Positions 13,715 to 64,000 of a stretch of DNA of 64,000 nt are shown here, one piece after another. The stretch covers positions 310,001-374,000 of the IMG/VR virus record IMGVR_UViG_3300023174_000033; one strand, given 5' to 3'. The notes below the pieces were generated by a model that was given only the letters and a program-made list of their open reading frames with translations, had not been told where the DNA came from and did not search any database. The translations under genes were made by a program, and so were the position numbers. The number at the start of each line of letters is the position of its first letter. Within the stretch, counting starts at the first letter, position 1.

Positions 13715-13735
13715 AACCCCACTAAAAGTGGGGTT
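13715..13735. terminator. Rho-independent terminator
   Basis: AACCCCACT-AAA-AGTGGGGTT with flanking A/T tracts. Confidence 0.7.
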
Positions 13736-53061: not shown

Positions 53062-53538
53062 TTAAATAAATGGATGTCTAACCTTTCTGAATTTTTCATT
53101 TTTACTCCTTAAGTACGCATAAAAATCTGCATCACCTCTATCACTATTACATTTAAGACAACAGACCACTAAATTTACTTGAGTATTATTCCCACCTTTG
53201 GAAATAGGAATGATATGATCAGTATTAGCATTTGTTTGAGTTAATTTCGTATTACAATAAAGACATTTTACATTTTTATTTTTATTTAAAAAGTCTTTAG
53301 CAAATCCACTTGTTCTTCTTTTAACTTTTTTATCGTATTTCTTTAGTCCAATTACTACAATACGTTTTGTAAGTTTGATTTTTTTCCTAAAAATCAAACA
53401 TTTTCTATAGTTTTTATTAAGCCCAACAAGTATATTTAACACAAAAGACCATCTTCTATAAAATTCCCATTCAACAGAAATATAATGCTCATCTTTTTTG
53501 AACAAAATTTCTTTGAATATTTTTAAAACACTACTCAA
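53062..53538 (-). CDS. HNH endonuclease
   Basis: CLYC...DHIIPISKGG.N...NLVVCCLKCNSDRG. Confidence 0.85.
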   Translation of the reverse strand: MSSVLKIFKEILFKKDEHYISVEWEFYRRWSFVLNILVGLNKNYRKCLIFRKKIKLTKRIVVIGLKKYDKKVKRRTSGFAKDFLNKNKNVKCLYCNTKLTQTNANTDHIIPISKGGNNTQVNLVVCCLKCNSDRGDADFYAYLRSKNEKFRKVRHPFI

Positions 53539-54648: not shown

Positions 54649-55437
54649 ATGGAACAATATTATGACCAAAAAACACTAGGTATCTCTAAACCATATAGAG
54701 ATCATTTCAATAACGATTCTTTTGAGCTTTTCAGAATACATTATCCAAATCTTTATGAAATATTTCCAAATGGATATAGACTTATTTACAAAGATTCACA
54801 AAAAACTGTAAACTCACTTTTTAATAAATTAGGCACAAACTACTCTGCTTATACCTATTTGGTTAATAGTACAATCGAACAAATGGTTAAGACTGGTGTT
54901 GTTGGAAATTCTAGTGAAATAAATCCCTTACAAGAAGATGGGTATAATTCAATAATTGATTATTTAAAGAACAATAAAGAATTCTTTAGTAGTCTTCTTC
55001 CAGAAATGGGTAAGTTAATCAATAGGTCAACTGTTATCGGAGATAGAGCAGAAGTGAGTGCTGAAGAAGTTCTTCGTAAAATATTTGGAAAAGATGTTGA
55101 AATAAGACACACTGCTGGCCTTGGACAAATGGAAGATACCCATGGTGGAAAAGATAGAGTAATTATAAAGAATGGACAGGCATATAATGTTCAAATTAAA
55201 GTTTGTGCAGGAATTGATGAAGAAAATGGAACTTATTATATCAAACATTTAGGTGCTAAATTGTACCCTAACGTAGATATTATGGTTTTCAAAAGAGGAA
55301 ATTGGTTTTATGCTTTTAGAGCAAAAGATGCAAGAGGTATCACAACATTAGAAATATTGGGTAATAGAGAAGGTTATATGATTCCTTCAATTCACAAAAT
55401 TCTGGCGACTAAATTAGAACCCGCTAAAAATATCTAA
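54649..55437 (+). CDS. Putative PD-(D/E)XK (QxK-type) endonuclease
   Basis: G...E...DTHGGKD.......VQIK. Confidence 0.4.
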   Translation: MEQYYDQKTLGISKPYRDHFNNDSFELFRIHYPNLYEIFPNGYRLIYKDSQKTVNSLFNKLGTNYSAYTYLVNSTIEQMVKTGVVGNSSEINPLQEDGYNSIIDYLKNNKEFFSSLLPEMGKLINRSTVIGDRAEVSAEEVLRKIFGKDVEIRHTAGLGQMEDTHGGKDRVIIKNGQAYNVQIKVCAGIDEENGTYYIKHLGAKLYPNVDIMVFKRGNWFYAFRAKDARGITTLEILGNREGYMIPSIHKILATKLEPAKNI

Positions 55438-56645
55438 AACAACACTTAGTCTTTTTGTGATTAGTGGCATACCAAGTGGTTCAATAATTGAATTTATTGG
55501 TGAGAGAATACACTTTTCAAATTGAGTATCCAAGTCAATCTCGGGAGCCATTTCTATTGGATAAGATCCTCTTATAAAAGCAAAAACTTCATTAACACTT
55601 TTATCTTTACAGTAATAATATTTGATTTTATCACCAGATTTAATGTATTCGTATTTGTTTTGTAAAGCTTTATTCTTATTTAATAAGAAATTGTGATAAG
55701 CAGAAGCCTTTACAGCAAAGTGGGCACCACTTACAAATTCTAACTTATCCTTATCGTTCAATACTTTTTCACCATACTTTGAACAAGATGATTGCATACA
55801 AATCTCATCAATTCTATCAGGAACACATAGGTCAAACTCTTTTTTAAGGTTCTTTACAAGTTTTAATAACTCCTTTATATTAAATGAGTCAGGATGCTCA
55901 AAAAGATATTTAACAATACCAATAATCTTATCCCTTGCAAATAGTGGTGTTGATGATCTAACAAGTTCTACACCTTTTGGGAAGATATATGACATCCTAT
56001 CATAAGGAATTCCATCTTCATATACAATATGTTGAATATACTTTTTCTTTGCAATAGAAATAATAGATTCGGAAATCCTTTCAAGTTCAAAATCTTGTTT
56101 ATTCTCAACTCCGTAAGTAGCAGCATGTTCATCTAAACACTTTTTGAAATATCCAGCATATCTATTTTTATCAAGAGCATGGATAAAATCTAACTCTGAT
56201 GAATATTGATGTTTCCACTCACAATGATCCATTGCTGGTTTGAATGATACAAATAATGAATCAGTATCTGCATAAATAGAAACTTCTTCACCCCTTGGAA
56301 TTGGTGTGACATTTTTAAGGTTCATTGCTTGGTGAAGTTCTGTATCTAAGTGCCATTGATTATACCAATAGTCCTCATTTACTTGGTTCATTGTTTGAGT
56401 AAGATTACGACCTTCTGCTGTGATTGTACCAGCTACATAGTTGTTAAACAAAATGAAATAAGGTGCGGCGAATGCTCCGTCCTGTGGTGCCCCCTCACCC
56501 GAAGATGAGGGGGCTAAAAGTAGGACCCATTAAGTACGAGCTTCAATCCGGTCTGTAAAGCGTTGTAATATTCAACATCCCTTTTAAGTTCCGAAGCTTG
56601 TCTTTTTAGGTCCTCTAATTTTTTAATTTTTGACTCTTTTGACAT
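55414..56645 (-). CDS. Family-B DNA polymerase C-terminal subunit (fingers-palm-thumb), interrupted by a 41-nt element: join(56645..56520, 56478..55414), 396 aa
   Basis: The 5' part MSKESK...QTGLKLVLNGSY and the 3' part GAFAAPYF...ITAEGR together give motif B. Motif C YADTDS, KKKY and KGVELVRSSTP are present. Confidence 0.85.
56479..56519 (-). other. 41-nt intervening element (mini-intron or ribosomal bypass sequence) in polymerase motif B
   Basis: TTTTA-GCCCCCTCATC-TTCG-GGTGAGGGGGC-ACCAC-AGGAC. It has an in-frame TAG, an 11-bp cUUCGg hairpin and an AC terminal repeat, and its removal restores TAC GGA (YG). Confidence 0.8.
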
Positions 56646-56711
56646 AGGAATTTTATAAAAAAACACCGAAAAGTTTAACAGGAACCCATGGGGCTTTTAT
56701 ATATATATCTT

Positions 56712-57563
56712 ATGCTTAAATCAGAAAAAATAACAATACCAATATCATATAGAAATGTAAGTCACTACATGAAATTGGGTTATGATGCTAAAATAAATCA
56801 AGACTTGGAAATTTATGTCAAAGACTTACCAGCAGTATCCCATGTGAAGATAAATGTCATTTGTGAAATTTGTAAAATAGAAAAGAATTTGATGTATTGT
56901 AAATATTTAAAAAATAAAAGCATGCATGGGTTTTATGGATGTAAATCTTGTTCGAGACAAAAAGCAGTTCTTACTAGTAGACAGATGTACGGCGTAGATA
57001 ATTGGATGCAGTTAGAAGAATCAAAAAAAATTATAAGTCAAAGAAATATAGAAAAGTATGGTGTTAAAACTACATTATTAGTAAGTGAAACTCAGGATAA
57101 AATATCCAAAACCATGATGTCAAAATATAATACCGATAAATGGTATGAAATAAGAACTCCGAATACGAAAAAATTTGTTTTCAAAAATTTAGAATCCAAG
57201 GAATTCATATTTGAAAATCCAGAGGAACAATATGTAGATATTTATGATGAAAATTACTACACTTATAGAACTGAAGTAAGGAGAATAACAAAGAGGAATC
57301 AAAAAAAATTGTTCAAAGAGTGGGATGGTTACGATCATTATGATGGTGAATACATTAAGGAAAACTTAACATTAACACCGAATCATAAAGATTATCCATC
57401 AGTAGACCACAAAATTTCCATTTATCATGGATACAAAAATAATTTACATCCAACAATAATAGGGGATTTATCAAATTTATGTATAACTAAAATTAAGATA
57501 AATTCAGCTAAAAGGGATTTGATAGAGGAACAATTCTTACAAATTTTTCAAACTCCAAAATAA
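56712..57563 (+). CDS. Free-standing HNH-type (homing) endonuclease with a zinc ribbon
   Basis: CEIC...CKSC, YGVDN/KYGV repeats and a C-terminal SVDHKISI..G......IG..SNL.......NSAK. Likely ATG at 56712. Confidence 0.7.
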   Translation: MLKSEKITIPISYRNVSHYMKLGYDAKINQDLEIYVKDLPAVSHVKINVICEICKIEKNLMYCKYLKNKSMHGFYGCKSCSRQKAVLTSRQMYGVDNWMQLEESKKIISQRNIEKYGVKTTLLVSETQDKISKTMMSKYNTDKWYEIRTPNTKKFVFKNLESKEFIFENPEEQYVDIYDENYYTYRTEVRRITKRNQKKLFKEWDGYDHYDGEYIKENLTLTPNHKDYPSVDHKISIYHGYKNNLHPTIIGDLSNLCITKIKINSAKRDLIEEQFLQIFQTPK

Positions 57564-58888
57564 TTAAAAGGTGTTATCAATTTCAATTCATTTTTAACAG
57601 AATCACTAACCTTTAACCCTTCAATAAAGTTCCAAATATCTGACCTTTCAATTTTATCCCTACCTCTAGTTAAATCCTTGAGAGCTTCATAAGGTTTTGG
57701 ATATTTTTCCCTCCTTAGAATTGTTTGGATTCCTTCAGATATAACTACCCAATTGTTTTCCAAGTCTTCATCTATTTTTACCTTGTTGATTACTAATTTA
57801 TCCAAACCTTTCATTATAGAATTAAAGCTTATTTTAATATGTGACATTGGTACACCAATATTTCTCAAAACTGTGGAATCAGTTAAATCCCTCTGTAACC
57901 TACTAATAGGTAACTTTTCTGACAAGTGATTCAGTAAGGAATTGGAAAGTCCTAGATTGCCTTCAGCATTTTCAAAATCAATTGGATTTACTTTATGTGG
58001 CATTGCTGATGATCCAACCTCACCTTCTTTTAACTTTTGTTTGAAATAATCCATTGAAATATACTGCCAAATATCTTTACACAAGTCCAAAAGGATAACA
58101 TTTATTCTTTTTAGGTTATCAAATAGAGCTGAAAGATTGTCATAATGTTCAATTTGTGTGGTATACTGATATCTCTTCAAACCCATACTTGATAGAAATT
58201 CGTTTGAGAATTTAACCCAATCAACATTTGGATAAGCTACAATATGAGCATTGAAATTTCCGGTAGCTCCGCCAAATTTTCCACGAAATTTAATTTGTTC
58301 AATCATTTCAAGCTGATTTTTTAACCTTTCTACAAAGACCATAAGTTCCTTGCCCATTCTTGATGGAGATGCTGGTTGACCATGAGTCCTTGTTAGTATC
58401 ACTATATCATTTGTATCTTCTGCTAGTGATTCAATCTTATCAATTAACTTATGTAAATCAACAATATAGATATTTTGAAACCATTTTCTAATCATTAGAG
58501 GTATAGCTGTATTGTTAATATCTTGTGAGGTAAGTCCAAAATGAACGAATTCTTTATACTCACCCAAACCTACGGTATTAATTTTTTCTTTTAGAAAATA
58601 TTCAAGAGCTTTTACATCATGATTTATTTCTTTTTCAATTTTTTTGATTAGAAAAGCTTCTTCAAGATCAAAATTATTGTAGATGCTTTTTAGTTGGTTT
58701 CGTTGTACATCTTCAAGTATAAAATCAGAGATAATTTTTTTATCAAATAGTAAAATAAAGTATTCAATTTCAACATACAATCTCCATTTTAATAATGCAA
58801 ATTCAGAGAAATAACTTGATAAAGGTTTGGTTTGACTATTATATCTGCCATCTATGGGTGATATATTGAGTAATTCATTATAATCCAT
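57548..58888 (-). CDS. purB: Adenylosuccinate lyase
   Basis: ISPIDGRY, NHDVKA, HFGLTSQDIN, RTHGQPA, GSSAMPHKVNPIDFEN and SRLQRDLTDSTV. ATG at 58888. Confidence 0.95.
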   Translation of the reverse strand: MDYNELLNISPIDGRYNSQTKPLSSYFSEFALLKWRLYVEIEYFILLFDKKIISDFILEDVQRNQLKSIYNNFDLEEAFLIKKIEKEINHDVKALEYFLKEKINTVGLGEYKEFVHFGLTSQDINNTAIPLMIRKWFQNIYIVDLHKLIDKIESLAEDTNDIVILTRTHGQPASPSRMGKELMVFVERLKNQLEMIEQIKFRGKFGGATGNFNAHIVAYPNVDWVKFSNEFLSSMGLKRYQYTTQIEHYDNLSALFDNLKRINVILLDLCKDIWQYISMDYFKQKLKEGEVGSSAMPHKVNPIDFENAEGNLGLSNSLLNHLSEKLPISRLQRDLTDSTVLRNIGVPMSHIKISFNSIMKGLDKLVINKVKIDEDLENNWVVISEGIQTILRREKYPKPYEALKDLTRGRDKIERSDIWNFIEGLKVSDSVKNELKLITPFNYFGV

Positions 58889-58889
58889 A

Positions 58890-59669
58890 TCAATCTGTTG
58901 AAAAATCTTGTTCAAATGATAACATAAGATTTGATTCATCATCTTTTATAAGAATGAAGTTTTCAAATATGTTGAATTTTATATCTCCCTTATCTAAATC
59001 AATATTAGATAAGTATTTCTTGTTAAACATAATGTGTTGATTTGAAACTTGAACATCATCAACCTCCAATTCCCATTTTGAAATTTCGCTAAAAAAAACT
59101 TTGTTGGTTTGAACATTGATGTTGAGAATTCTATCTTCGTTATTGATTGTAGAAAGTTTTTTTATACTAGTGAAATCTTCCAAACTCACTGTGAAATTCC
59201 ATTTAGATTTTTTCAAATCAAGTTTGGTGTCAATGAATTTCTTATTCAAGTCTCTTATTTTGTGCAATTCAGCTCCTATTGATGAAATCTTTAATTTACC
59301 ATTATGTAAGTGAATAGTTCTAATTTGAAATAAGTTATCTTCATCAGGTACTGTTTTAGCACTTAATTCAAGTTTTATGGATTTTTTTGGGTCAAAGAAT
59401 TTTATATTCTTTACGAATTTAGATGAAGATGTTAAAACAAAATCGTAATTCTCTTCCTCCTCAAAGTTTGAGATATACGTTTTAGTATCCAATAAAAAAC
59501 ATTTCATAGCGGAAACTTGTCCCTCATTACCCAAGATTGAGTAAATCAAGATATGGTCTTTTGAAATTTTCATCTTTATTGTATCTTCAATTCCGGTTAG
59601 ATCTTGTAATTTATCCACAAAAGCGAGGAAATTATCAGAGTTCATAATAAGATTCAGTTTTTTCAACAT
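58890..59669 (-). CDS. Sliding clamp / polymerase processivity factor (gp45/PCNA-like)
   Basis: 259 aa two-domain alpha/beta pattern, in the same strand run as the polymerase. Confidence 0.5.
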   Translation of the reverse strand: MLKKLNLIMNSDNFLAFVDKLQDLTGIEDTIKMKISKDHILIYSILGNEGQVSAMKCFLLDTKTYISNFEEEENYDFVLTSSSKFVKNIKFFDPKKSIKLELSAKTVPDEDNLFQIRTIHLHNGKLKISSIGAELHKIRDLNKKFIDTKLDLKKSKWNFTVSLEDFTSIKKLSTINNEDRILNINVQTNKVFFSEISKWELEVDDVQVSNQHIMFNKKYLSNIDLDKGDIKFNIFENFILIKDDESNLMLSFEQDFSTD

Positions 59670-59800: not shown

Positions 59801-62800
59801 ATGGCAACAAACAAAATCGTCAATATCCCACAATGGATCACAGTAGCATCGGCATCAACACCAGAACCAGGATTTAGTACAATCTATCCAAAAAACGGAG
59901 AAATATTTTGGTATGTTCTTGATGATACTAGCACAGAAAAAAGGTTAGCTTTAGATTATTATTGGGGAAAAGGTTTCTCTGCAAGTGCTTTATTACCTTC
60001 TCCAAGTCTTTATGGATATCAAATTGATGTATTGTTGGGTGGTGGTTTAACATTTTCTTCACAAAGTGAGATTACTGTATTTGGTATAACACCAAGTATG
60101 TTATCCATAACTGGAAGTTATGTTGATGGATATGTTTTATCAACTTCAACATATAGTGGTCAATTCAAATGGGTTCCTTACAATTCACCAAATGTTTATG
60201 GTGATGCTAGTAGATTAGCAAAATTTAGTGGCCCTTCAACTTTAACATCATCTCTTATAATTGATACTGGTTCAAGTATAATAATTGGACCTACTCCAGC
60301 TTTCGTATCAGCTTCATTTAGTGTTGCTGGTAATGTAAATGTTGGTAGATTTCTTTATTTCAATGATTCACAAACAAATTATATTGAGAATCAATTAAAT
60401 GGTGGTTTTAATATAAGTACCAGTGATGAATTCTCTGTAAATTTAGCGACTAGTGGTTCATATCCTATAATTGATTTTGATTATGATACCGGTGATATCA
60501 AGAGGTTGAGTTTCATGGGTGGGTTGGTAGAAATAAACGATTACACTTATAGTAATTACTTATCTGCATCAAACTTGGATTATGTTAGTTTTGGTAATAC
60601 TGGTAATGAATTCAAATTAAAGTTAATATCTGGTACCCAAGGAGTTTTACAAATACAAGATGGTGGCCAATCAACTTATAGTGTATTAGTTTCTGATGGA
60701 AGTGGTATTGCTACTTGGCAGAAAATTTCTGGATATAACGGATTAACAAATTCTGGTTTAAATATTGGATTAAATTTATCAACTCGTAGTGGATTAATTG
60801 TTTCTGGCGGATCTGTTAGTTTTGATTATAGTAAAATATCATCACCTATTTCAGTTAGTAATACTGGAACTTTATCACTTGCTACAGTTAGCGTTGTTAC
60901 AGGTGTTACATATGGTTCCGCAACGGAAATTGTTAGATTGAGTGTTGATCAGTTCGGTAGAATTATTAATATTTCAACCGCTTCAGTTACTACAACAACA
61001 GGTCCACAAGGTAGAACTGGTCCACAAGGTACTCGCGGAAATACTGGTCCACAAGGTCCGAGAGGACTAATTGGATTAAATGGTACTACCGGAGCTCAAG
61101 GTAATGGTGGACCAACTGGTCTACAAGGTGCAACTGGCCCACAAGGAACTGGCCCACAAGGTCCAACTGGTCCTGTCGGTTCAACCGGTTTACAAGGTTA
61201 TAGTGGACCTCAAGGTGAAACTGGTCCACAAGGTGAAACTGGTCCACAAGGTTTTTATGGTGATACTGGTCCACAAGGATTACAGGGCGAAACTGGACCA
61301 CAAGGTGATATTGGCCCACAAGGTGTTTATGGTGATACTGGTCCACAAGGTTTACAGGGTCAAATTGGTCCACAGGGATACCAAGGAGATATGGGGCCAC
61401 AGGGATACCAAGGAGATATGGGACCACAAGGTTTCCAGGGTGAAACAGGTCCACAAGGTTATCAAGGTGATATGGGTCCACAAGGATGGCAAGGTGTAAC
61501 AGGACCTCAAGGTTTCCAAGGTGAAACTGGACCACAAGGTGATATGGGTCCACAAGGATGGCAAGGTGTAACAGGACCTCAAGGTTTCCAAGGTGTTTCT
61601 GGTCCACAAGGTGACCAAGGTGATATTGGACCTCAAGGCTTCCAAGGTGAAACAGGTCCACAGGGTTATCAAGGAGATATTGGTTTACAAGGTGAAACTG
61701 GTCCACAGGGATTACAAGGTATATCTGGACCACAGGGTTTACAAGGAGAAACTGGCCCACAAGGTGAAACAGGTCCACAAGGTTATCAAGGAGGTATGGG
61801 ACCACAAGGTTTCCAAGGTGAAACAGGTCCACAAGGTTATCAAGGTGAAACTGGCCCACAGGGTTATCAAGGAGATATAGGACCACAGGGATATCAGGGT
61901 GACATGGGACCACAGGGATATCAGGGTGACATGGGTCCACAAGGTGATATTGGTTATCAAGGTGTGTCTGGTCCACAAGGTGACCAAGGTGATATGGGTC
62001 CTCAAGGGGATATTGGTTTCCAAGGTGACACTGGACCACAAGGATTGCAAGGTTTATCTGGACCGCAAGGTGTTCAAGGTGTAACAGGACCACAAGGTAG
62101 AACAGGGCCTCAAGGTAGAACAGGACCTCAAGGAAGACAAGGTTTAGTAACGACTATTAATCAATCTCCGGTTCAATGGAGATATGAAGGATTGATCGTT
62201 GGAACAGGTCCGGCTCAAAGTAAATTTGAGTCTAATACGAATGTTATAAAAAATGTTGCTACATTTAGGTTTAATTACTTTGATGTGAATAATATTGATT
62301 ATTCCGGTTGGTTTGCTGATTTGGATACTTATATTGTTAATGGACAAAGTTCTTACATTCAAGTTTATGAAAGTTCTTTAACAACACAAAATGGTTTATA
62401 CAAAATTACGGGTGTTAGCACGGCTTCAACGACTCCGGTTTCTTATCAATTAACCGTTACAAATGTTGCTGGTGGTGGTACTTTCAGTGTTGGTAGAACT
62501 TATAGTGTTGTTTGGTCATCATTGCCGGTTGGCCCACAAGGAGATAGTGGTCCACAAGGATTAATTGGTGAAACTGGTTATCAAGGTGAGACTGGACCTC
62601 AAGGTGAAATTGGTTTACAAGGTGTGCAGGGTGTCCAAGGTGTCCAAGGTGTTTCCGGCCCTCAAGGTATTCAAGGAGCTGTTTTACCACTTTCACAAGC
62701 GTTTTCAATTTGGAATTTCAATAGTGCTACATTAAGTACTTTGAGTGAATTCAGTACTAATGATGCTACTCTTCAAAATGTTACAAGTTTTGGAATTTCA

Positions 62801-64000
62801 TATTATGATATCTACAATATTGACCACACAAATTGGTTTGCACAAATAGAAAACTTCGTTCAAAATAATCAAGTAACATATTTATACGTTATTGAAGAAG
62901 GAAATAGCCCGGTTAGAGGTTTATACAGAGTAGACGAAGTTTTTGATAATGGTAGTTTGGGATATGACCTAGGTGTATATCCAATAATATTCGGAGGAAC
63001 CTTCACAAATGGTGTTACTTATTCAATTACTTGGGTTGCTAATGGATCAATGGGTACAACTGGTTCACAAGGTGATATAGGTCCTCAAGGTGATTTCGGA
63101 CCACAAGGTGAGATGGGATTACAAGGGGATATGGGTCCACAAGGTTTCCAAGGTGAAACTGGCCCTCAAGGTTTCCAAGGCGATATGGGACCTCAGGGAG
63201 ACCAAGGTGATATGGGACCTCAAGGTTTCCAAGGAATAATTGGTTTCCAAGGTCAAACTGGACCACAGGGTAGAATGGGTAATACCGGTCTACAGGGTTA
63301 TTCTGGGCCACAAGGTGATACTGGTATTCAAGGTGAAACTGGACCACAAGGTTTCCAAGGTGATTTTGGTTTACAGGGTATGCAAGGTCCTTTAGGAAAC
63401 CCAGCACTTAATATAACTTTCGGACCAACAACTTCAATTTCTGTAACACATAGTAGTTCAGTATATCCTTTGATTCAATTAATTGATACATTTGGAAATA
63501 CTTTCATACCAAACAGCATTATACACACATCTACATCTGAATTTATTTTGAATTTTGCTACTGAATCAAGTGGTACTATAATAATTGGAGGTGGAGCTGG
63601 CCCTCAGGGGGAAATGGGTGTTCAAGGTTATCAAGGGGAAATTGGACCTCAAGGAGACATCGGATTCCAAGGAATTAGCGGACCACAAGGTGAAATGGGT
63701 GTTCAAGGTTATCAAGGAGATATTGGTCCACAAGGTGATATTGGTTTCCAAGGTATTAGTGGTCCACAAGGAGATATGGGACCACAAGGTTATCAAGGTG
63801 ATATGGGTCCACAGGGTAACGAAGGGTTACAAGGTGTTTCTGGACCACAAGGTGACCAAGGTTTGGAAGGTCCACAAGGTGATATGGGTCCACAGGGTGA
63901 CCAAGGTTTTCAAGGTGAAACTGGGCCTCAAGGTTTCCAAGGTTTAGAAGGTCCACAAGGAGATATGGGACCACAGGGTGACCAAGGTTTACAGGGTGTT
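59801..64000 (+). CDS. Collagen-like fibre protein, partial (>1400 aa, runs off the right edge)
   Basis: ATG at 59801 after TAATATATA ([12 protein letters not shown]...), with in-frame Gly-X-Y (GPQGxx) tracts. Missing from the ORF track because there is no stop in the window. Confidence 0.9.
61001..64000 (+). repeat. Gly-X-Y coding repeats (ggwccwcaagg units)
   Basis: Four tracts: ~61001-62143, 62531-62677, 63044-63403 and 63599-64000. Confidence 0.9.

Follow-up and report, generated by a model that had tools for sequence, protein, structure and literature searches.

Do a nuclease gene and a short hairpin insert that breaks the frame of a neighbouring DNA polymerase gene in a huge lake phage belong together as one mobile cassette, comparable to the MobA/gene 60 element of phage T4, and if so how could the polymerase gene remain functional? 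To investigate this question in silico we analyzed a stretch of 64,000 nucleotides from the IMG/VR record IMGVR_UViG_3300023174_000033 (positions 310,001 to 374,000; the window) together with related metagenomic loci. A sequence-only reading had proposed that an HNH-type nuclease starting about 65 nt from the polymerase ATG and under 200 nt from a 41-nt insert cuts insert-less polymerase alleles at the conserved NGSYG codons, and that the insert gives immunity. We find that the elements are present as described, and that the co-occurrence test suggested by that reading came out positive. The cassette interpretation is therefore supported, while translational bypass, the cleavage site and immunity remain inferred.

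The elements of the locus

The region contains the following features, given in window coordinates.

56688..57563 (+): free-standing homing endonuclease gene, 291 aa, likely start at 56712, with an N-terminal beta/zinc-ribbon DNA-binding region, KYGV repeats (DUF7487) and a C-terminal domain predicted to be HNH-like (DH...N...N)
56647..57535 (no strand assigned): block absent from two related phages (L057 and L060), marking the extent of the nuclease insertion in this lineage
56520..56645 (−): first 42 codons of the gene for the stand-alone C-terminal PolB fragment (pol-C; MSKESK...KLVLNGSY), ending in the presumed take-off codon TAC (56522-56520)
56479..56519 (−): 41-nt non-coding gap with UUU, a UAG stop (56516-56514), a 10-bp hairpin with a UUCG loop (56513-56490), an 8-nt spacer and the presumed landing codon GAC (56481-56479)
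55414..56478 (−): remainder of pol-C, 354 codons starting GAFAAPYF, in a different frame from the first 42 codons, containing motif C (YADTDS) and the thumb
57548..58942 (−): purB (adenylosuccinate lyase), the upstream neighbour, whose 3' end overlaps the 3' end of the nuclease ORF by 16 nt; not part of the cassette

The alignment of 17 nuclease homologues shows an invariant Met at residue 9, which makes 56712 the likely start. This position is 66 nt from the polymerase ATG (56645-56643, minus strand), 193 nt from the near edge of the gap (56519) and 199 nt from the hairpin, in agreement with the distances given by the sequence-only reading. The clamp-like gene, purB and pol-C run on the minus strand with the nuclease on the opposite strand. 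PurB is confirmed by Pfam (Lyase_1 plus ASL_C), and pol-C by Pfam DNA_pol_B and the PHROG DNA polymerase annotation, whereas the “clamp” has no family hit and remains a positional guess.

The nuclease is matched by Pfam DUF7487 and the PHROG “homing endonuclease” annotation. Residues C59, C62, D240, H241, N263 and N272 are invariant in the alignment, and the AlphaFold model reaches a pLDDT above 90 in both terminal domains. The five best PDB matches of the C-terminal domain in Foldseek are Cas9 HNH domains and the Gme HNH nicking endonuclease, although E is only 0.06-0.46 (0.06-0.17 for the top hits). One must keep in mind that the HNH assignment is supported only by this fold comparison and by the invariant motif. 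No Pfam HNH model hits the protein, and a sequence search of PDB chains gave nothing meaningful.

On the minus strand the gap reads TTTTAG CCCCCTCATC TTCG GGTGAGGGGG CACCACAG GAC and lies between TAC (Tyr42) and GGA (Gly43). Removing it restores KLVLNGSYGAFAAPYF, which is what uninterrupted relatives encode. The hairpin has no chance expectation in the window (0 matches in 100 shuffles), its stem of 10-11 bp folds at −18 to −24 kcal/mol, and contigs from two independent lake samples of another study carry the gap with 0 differences, so that an assembly artefact can be rejected. No Rfam family matches the gap at E up to 1. It is not an intrinsic terminator, as there is no T-run and no site was called.

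A family of gaps in polymerase motif B

We classified 105 of about 130 related metagenomic loci (numbered with the prefix L; the window is L056). They hold 47 distinct gaps of 36-49 nt at six codon positions (codons 33-43), all within 11 codons of motif B. Only 15 of the 47 lengths are multiples of 3, and those checked carry in-frame stops. The presumed take-off and landing codons are read by the same tRNA in 36 of 47 gaps, and the landing codon co-varies with the take-off codon at each site: CUU to CUA in 17, GCU to GCU/GCA in 4, GUU to GUA/GUU in 4, UCU to UCA, GGU to GGC, and UAU to UAC/UAU in 7. The repeat is always in codon phase. A stop follows within two codons in 39 of 47 (at +1 in 6 and at +2 in 33), and the hairpin starts 5-6 nt after the take-off codon in 37 of 47. 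The stems are mostly 9-16 bp with co-varying inner pairs, the loops are mostly GNRA or UUCG, and the 3' spacer is variable and A-rich, with 4-8 nt in 40 of 47.

These codon-level features could be explained by ribosomes that bypass the gap. In the window, peptidyl-tRNA(Tyr) would leave UAC, the stable hairpin starting 6 nt downstream together with the nearby UAG would block normal decoding, and the tRNA would re-pair at the landing codon just before GGA, so that translation resumes with GAFAAPYF. However, the window's own pair (UAC/GAC) matches at only two of three positions, and bypass may be less efficient here than in relatives that use UAU to UAC. Its relatives L057 and L060 show a paired change (UAU/GAU), which speaks for bypass, whereas other gaps at the same site (site D) land on AAC, AAU, AGC, AAA or UAA. 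The stop is one codon removed from the take-off codon, unlike in T4, and only 4 of 43 window genes have a Shine-Dalgarno-like motif against a background of 8.5%, which makes a T4-style internal Shine-Dalgarno aid doubtful. No RNA run was listed that holds this sequence, and the one metatranscriptome contig that aligned lies in purB with 12 differences, so it comes from a relative. Bypass is thus inferred from sequence alone. No phage-encoded tRNA was found in the window.

Reading the stop as sense can be rejected, as the 41-nt gap shifts the frame, other gaps carry TAA, TAG or TGA, and the genome uses the standard code with long ORFs. Take-off from the codon just before the stop (UUU to UUC, or GCU to GCA) was likewise rejected, because it would delete the invariant Gly of NSxYG and fails for the many UAU GUU UAG ... 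UAC gaps.

An alternative is that the gap is removed from the RNA as a tiny ORF-less intervening sequence, cut and re-ligated by phage or host enzymes that recognise the hairpin, with the nuclease homing together with it. The site-D gaps with non-matching landing codons are easier to explain in this way, the flanks GUCCU/AGGAC of the window can pair and bring the two junctions together, and the association and mobility data reported below fit this reading as well as bypass. We nevertheless regard it as unlikely. The gap is far below the size of any self-splicing intron, and its boundaries share no sequence signal. The distance from the hairpin to the 5' junction is fixed, but that to the 3' junction varies from 2 to 16 nt, which a structure-measuring nuclease would not produce. 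The codon phase of the repeat and the synonymous landing codons in 36 of 47 gaps matter only to a ribosome, and such an mRNA splicing pathway does not appear to be known in bacteria or phages.

It is still less likely that there is no recoding at all, and that the C-fragment is made as a 44-aa peptide ending NGSYF and an internally started protein of 354 aa, or that the gene is dead and another polymerase does the work. PolB is already split into separate genes in this clade and in Chryseobacterium phage MA9V-1, which makes a further split conceivable, and a TTG lies 10 codons after the gap in the window. The N-terminal PolB fragment was not found in the window or in the 5-kb flanks, except in the distant locus L044. 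On the other hand, no start codon is conserved after the gap in relatives, and the break would fall inside the invariant KxxxNSxYG helix. Both halves are under strong purifying selection over dS of about 0.8-2, with dN/dS of 0.03-0.06 downstream of the gap against seven relatives and about 0.09 upstream of it against L057 and L060, so the gene is not dead. The co-varying codons and the fixed hairpin spacing would also remain unexplained.

Association and joint exchange of nuclease and gap

Homologues of the nuclease lie divergently upstream of pol-C in 36 distinct gap-bearing loci and in only 5 gap-less ones, while 10 loci have a gap but no nuclease and 23 have neither (Fisher p = 5e-7, not corrected for phylogeny). 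A phylogenetically paired sign test was not significant (median p 0.125, only 6 pairs). By our reading, all nucleases with both the standard N-terminal domain and the C-terminal HNH domain sit next to a gap. The five loci with a nuclease homologue next to an uninterrupted pol-C (L058, L068, L080, L121, L132) carry variant-domain nucleases; L080, for example, has the standard N-terminus but a different C-terminus. The motif-B DNA of L058 is nearly the same as that of the nuclease-less L059, and those enzymes must therefore cut elsewhere, be inactive, or be tolerated.

Further support comes from the mobility of the elements. On the pol-C tree we counted at least 10 changes of gap state and 12 of nuclease state. 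Near-identical phages differ by the presence of the cassette (L030 against L031), and sister phages differ in gap site (window site D against L006 site A; L023 site D against L026 site A2). Clean nuclease insertions of 860-890 nt are seen by blastn of the window against L057 and L060, which have purB followed directly by pol-C, and in L031 against L030 (about 860 nt). PurB is also found next to pol-C without a nuclease in L006 and L059. The 126 nt between nuclease and gap are co-converted with them: L031 and L030 are 80% identical in this segment against 92-98% in the flanks, L031 and L032 are 91% identical here against 83% downstream, and similarity between L023 and L027 resumes only at Gly43. 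In L014 a GIY-YIG plus NUMOD3 gene replaces the HNH gene at the same place.

One might argue that nuclease and gap are independent selfish or regulatory elements which both happen to accumulate at the start of pol-C, the gap being a hairpin repeat or attenuator. The loci with only one of the two elements, the loose correlation between nuclease phylogeny and gap site, and a similar C4/G4 hairpin between genes at 13717-13733 point in this direction. We consider this improbable given the strong overall association, the co-converted segment, the single copy of the gap in 64 kb, and the restriction of all gaps to 11 codons of one gene in dozens of phages. Loss of the nuclease with retention of the gap is the expected decay path, and is also seen for MobA.

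Taken as a whole, nuclease gene, first 42 codons of pol-C and hairpin gap co-occur and are exchanged together among related huge freshwater phages, as a cassette of about 1.06-1.09 kb. We infer that the nuclease cuts or nicks gap-less alleles in this highly conserved stretch during co-infection, that repair copies nuclease gene and gap into the recipient, and that the gap protects the carrier by interrupting the target at a place where the protein sequence cannot change, with bypass keeping the gene functional. We assign this combined explanation a probability of roughly 0.6. As gaps occur at six positions, any target is the wider motif-B stretch and not specifically the NGSYG codons favored by the sequence-only reading.

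Relation to known bypass and homing systems

The closest system is the MobA/gene 60 cassette of phage T4 (Bonocora et al. 2011; Manning & Atkins, bioRxiv 10.1101/2022.08.31.505936). That element is 1097-1106 nt, has a 44-45 aa N-terminal extension before the gap, loses or swaps its nuclease, and its gap blocks MobA nicking. In both cases a free-standing HNH-type nuclease lies next to an essential replication gene that exists as a separate gene fragment, with a gap of a few tens of nt about 42-46 codons after the start of the downstream fragment. A stable UUCG or GNRA hairpin at the 5' end of the gap, an element size of about 1.1 kb including the 5' coding segment, and a gap that persists when the nuclease is lost or swapped for GIY-YIG are also shared. 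A nearby stop and matched codons are found in most gaps of the family (39 and 36 of 47), but the window's own codon pair matches at only two of three positions.

The nuclease is, however, not a MobA homologue. Aligning the 17-member profile with hhalign gave a probability of 0.1% both against intact MobA of phage T4T and against T4 gp60.1, the HNH motif is C-terminal here and N-terminal in MobA, and the gene is transcribed divergently. The host gene is the family B DNA polymerase C-fragment and not topoisomerase II, and the gene split predates the cassette, since gap-less, nuclease-less relatives are split too. The gaps sit at six positions rather than at one position plus or minus one codon, the hairpin starts 5-6 nt after the take-off codon rather than containing it, the stop is usually at +2, and the host probably does not use Shine-Dalgarno sequences.

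Long-range bypass of a coding gap is known in only two settings, T4 gene 60 with its MobA-linked homologues in topoisomerase genes, and yeast mitochondrial byps. The 2022 survey of gene 60 homologues found cases in topoisomerase genes only, and our literature searches found no polymerase case. It is somewhat more likely than not that the gaps represent a second, independently evolved family of programmed bypass elements in phages, with a non-homologous HNH (sometimes GIY-YIG) nuclease that uses the gap as an immunity insert in motif B, operating in ribosomes of a probably Shine-Dalgarno-independent (Bacteroidota-like) host, and offering 47 natural variants including near-cognate landings. If bypass is confirmed, endonuclease plus bypass gap would be a recurrent evolutionary solution for invading sequence that cannot tolerate change, and the rules of take-off, hairpin spacing and landing could be tested on dozens of natural variants, and bypass could be studied in ribosomes that do not use Shine-Dalgarno pairing. 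Gene callers will report these polymerases as truncated or as pseudogenes.

Two further systems can be compared. In the collaborative homing of F-CphI with the ORF-less group I intron of cyanophage psbA, a nuclease encoded outside the interrupted gene appears, as inferred here, to target the uninterrupted allele, and the intervening sequence to protect the carrier and to be co-inherited with the nuclease. The intervening sequence here has no ribozyme fold and shows codon-level features. The mitochondrial byp elements of Magnusiomyces capitatus (Lang et al. 2014) are, as far as is known, short (27-55 nt) GC-rich hairpin inserts in an AT-rich genome with matched take-off and landing codons that are mobile between sites. 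Byps are scattered through many genes and seem not to be linked to an endonuclease, while here there is one gap in 64 kb, always in pol-C, and linked to a nuclease gene.

Gene context and anatomy of the interrupted polymerase gene

To place the observation in its context we first examined the gene content of the window, which is part of a 464,605-bp viral contig from a lake metagenome. Its closest database relatives are uncultured ‘huge phages’ of 630-735 kb. The window has about 30% G+C and uses the standard genetic code. G+C rises to 41% at 60000-64000, where ORFs are open in all six frames with a triplet periodicity. As the related locus L001 encodes a 1477-aa protein with long G-x-x (GATGSQGIQ) collagen-like repeats, the window probably has a similar collagen-repeat structural gene. 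The features considered here are the following:

58890-59669, minus strand: a gene termed a clamp in the sequence-only reading, which has no family hit
57548-58942, minus strand: purB (Pfam Lyase_1 plus ASL_C)
ATG at 56645, minus strand: a family B DNA polymerase gene (pol-C) that encodes only the C-terminal part of the enzyme, starting about 35 codons before motif B
56519-56479, minus strand: the 41-nt gap in pol-C
56688-57563, plus strand: the nuclease ORF, 291 aa
54649-55437, plus strand: a 262-aa ORF that converges on pol-C and overlaps its 3' end by 24 nt
53062-53538, minus strand: a second, classical HNH endonuclease gene (Pfam HNH_5/HNH), 158 aa

The split of the polymerase is ancestral to the group. 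The relatives L001 and L002 encode it as an uninterrupted 474-aa ORF that begins MT(R/K)..EK...LKLVLNGSYGAF, and Chryseobacterium phage MA9V-1 also has separate N- and C-terminal polymerase genes.

Forty-two codons after the polymerase ATG the frame reads AAT GGG TCC TAC TTT TAG, and after 41 nt it resumes in another frame with GGA GCA TTC (GAFAAPYF...). Deleting exactly these 41 nt restores the motif and the spacing seen in uninterrupted relatives. The gap contains, in order, a UAG stop, a 10-bp hairpin with a UUCG tetraloop (CCCCCUCAUC UUCG GGUGAGGGGG; −18 kcal/mol alone and about −23 to −24 kcal/mol for the whole gap), an 8-nt spacer and the codon GAC. The hairpin sequence has no chance expectation, matches no Rfam family and is not terminator-like. 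The only other C-run/G-run hairpin in the window (CCCCACTAAAAGTGGGG, 13717-13733) lies between genes and is flanked by T/A runs on both strands, like a bidirectional terminator; the gap hairpins resemble it in style. Contigs from two independent lake samples of a different study contain the gap without a single difference, and no gap-less joint was seen.

The nuclease ORF starts divergently and lies 66 nt from the polymerase ATG if it begins at the conserved Met9. The sequence-only reading, which had described an HNH-type zinc-ribbon gene starting divergently about 65 nt from the polymerase ATG, is therefore accurate in its description.

The predicted HNH-type nuclease

Pfam recognizes only DUF7487, the KYGV repeats, in the nuclease, while PHROGs gives ‘homing endonuclease’ for the N-terminal half. 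Seventeen homologues align well and share an invariant CxxC...CxxC zinc ribbon and a C-terminal block, YP(T/S)(I/V)DHK.S...G..N....I...NLCITK..IN..K. An AlphaFold model built on that alignment is confident in both terminal domains, and its best PDB matches are HNH domains (GeoCas9, NmeCas9 and the Gme HNH nicking endonuclease), albeit with weak E-values of 0.06-0.46. We therefore accept the designation ‘HNH-type zinc-ribbon endonuclease’. It is not a MobA homologue, as profile comparison with intact MobA of phage T4T gives 0.1% probability and MobA has its HNH motif at the N-terminus.

The second HNH gene of the window (53062-53538) is conserved at about 50% identity downstream of pol-C in many relatives, whether or not they carry a gap, so it behaves like a core gene rather than a mobile one. 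The 262-aa ORF at 54649-55437 has no homologue in the first 50 related loci. L001 and L002 have unrelated ORFs of 239-251 aa at the same place, whose sequences hint at PD-(D/E)XK-type nucleases, so this may be another variable selfish-gene slot.

A family of gaps and selection on the polymerase gene

To investigate whether the gap is an isolated case we fetched 47 related loci from IMG/VR and 80 from metagenomes, and classified 105 of them. They hold 47 distinct gaps of 36-49 nt, which all lie in the same 11 codons: after codon 33 (Ala), 34 (Leu), 37 (Val), 41 (Ser), 42 (Tyr) or 43 (Gly). The gaps share a common anatomy. The take-off codon is followed by 5-6 nt and then by a C-run/G-run hairpin, mostly of 9-16 bp, whose inner pairs co-vary and whose loop is usually GNRA (UUCG in the window). 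After the hairpin comes an A-rich spacer, 4-8 nt long in 40 of 47 gaps, and then a landing codon. A stop is the first codon after the take-off codon in 6 gaps and the second in 33. Only 15 of 47 gaps have a length divisible by three, and those examined contain in-frame stops. The landing codon changes with the site, always in codon phase.

Take-off and landing codons in 36 of the 47 distinct gaps
Take-off; landing; number of gaps
CUU/CUC/CUG; CUA; 19
GCU; GCU/GCA; 4
GUU; GUA/GUU; 4
UCU; UCA; 1
GGU; GGC; 1
UAU; UAC/UAU; 7

Codon phase and synonymy matter only to a ribosome carrying a peptidyl-tRNA, and a splicing enzyme or a target-site duplication would not respect them. Removal of the gap at the RNA level remains the main alternative to bypass by the ribosome, although we regard it as unlikely. 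One must keep in mind that the remaining eleven gaps, all at the Tyr site, land on UAA, GAU, GAC, AAU, AAC, AGC or AAA. The window (UAC to GAC) is one of these, and its landing codon is only near-cognate. Its nearest gap-bearing relatives, the loci L057 and L060, have UAU to GAU, a paired change that keeps two of the three positions matched.

Between the window and seven relatives dN/dS is 0.03-0.06 for the 354 codons after the gap, at dS 0.8-2.5, and about 0.09 for the 42 codons before the gap. No start codon is conserved after the gap. Both parts are therefore translated, and a simple pseudogene or a second gene split is unlikely.

Co-occurrence, mobility and potential mechanism

The sequence-only reading had proposed co-occurrence of the HNH gene and the insert across related genomes as a test of its cassette hypothesis. 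We counted distinct loci with enough upstream sequence to judge the presence of the nuclease.

Co-occurrence of gap and nuclease in distinct loci
State; nuclease present; nuclease absent
Gap present; 36; 10
Gap absent; 5; 23

Fisher's exact test gives p = 5e-7. The 36 include one locus (L014) where a GIY-YIG plus NUMOD3 gene occupies the place of the HNH gene, and one (L101) with only a remnant: L101 keeps 25 aa of the standard nuclease, but has an unrelated HNH-like ORF of 248 aa further upstream (L101:1522-2268, minus strand). The five exceptions, in which a nuclease is present without a gap, are the loci L058, L068, L080, L121 and L132. All have a different N-terminal or C-terminal domain from the standard type; L080, for instance, has the standard N-terminal DNA-binding half fused to a different C-terminal domain of about 300 aa, beside an uninterrupted pol-C (L080:860-2359, minus strand). 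Every nuclease with both the standard N-terminal domain and the C-terminal HNH domain sits beside a gap. While these counts are not phylogenetically independent, the gap state changes at least 10 times and the nuclease state at least 12 times on the pol-C tree. In the independent pairs that differ in gap state the nuclease goes the same way in 3-5 and never the opposite way, but with only six pairs the sign test cannot reach significance. The nuclease phylogeny follows the gap site only loosely.

Mobility is shown by closely related phages. The loci L031 and L030 represent almost the same phage (92-98% DNA identity in the flanks), and differ by a clean nuclease insertion of about 860 nt between the upstream IF3-like gene and the pol-C start, and by a 39-nt gap. 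A phage-encoded translation initiation factor IF-3 homologue (Pfam IF3_N plus IF3_C) lies directly upstream of pol-C in part of the clade (L023:4245-4763, also L029, L030, L034 and L036). The 126 nt between nuclease and gap are only 80% identical between L031 and L030, but 91% identical between L031 and another carrier, L032, which is only 83% identical downstream. Likewise, similarity between the loci L023 and L027 stops upstream of the nuclease and resumes exactly at Gly43. So the nuclease gene, the first 42 codons and the gap are exchanged as one block of about 1.1 kb, which is the size and layout described for the MobA element. In the lineage of the window, the relatives L057 and L060 have purB followed directly by pol-C, and this delimits the nuclease block to about 56647-57535.

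By analogy with MobA/gene 60 we infer that the nuclease may cut gap-less alleles in the motif-B stretch, that repair may copy the cassette into the cut allele, that the gap could protect the carrier because this DNA cannot vary at the protein level, and that ribosomes may hop the gap. The arrangement differs from that in T4 by a different gene and a non-homologous nuclease on the opposite strand, by six insertion positions, by a hairpin that begins after the take-off codon rather than including it, and by a stop usually at +2. In addition, the genome shows no Shine-Dalgarno usage (4 of 43 genes), which argues against a T4-like internal SD aid and, by inference, points to a Bacteroidota-like host. 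The only survey of gene 60 homologues found them exclusively in topoisomerase genes with MobA, and in full-text searches of the literature we found no polymerase-linked bypass.

The same small polymerase gene is hit by at least two kinds of selfish element. Several relatives (L011, L012, L015, L049, L077, L079 and L109) carry an intein-like insertion at its motif C, between YADTDS and LFVSF (…VEVDD.THTFIANDILVHN followed by SLFVSF), and the loci L040-L043 have an interruption of about 1.9 kb there. The window itself has no tRNA genes, while the start of L079 (L079:1-80), just upstream of the intein-like segment of pol-C, looks by eye like a tRNA gene.
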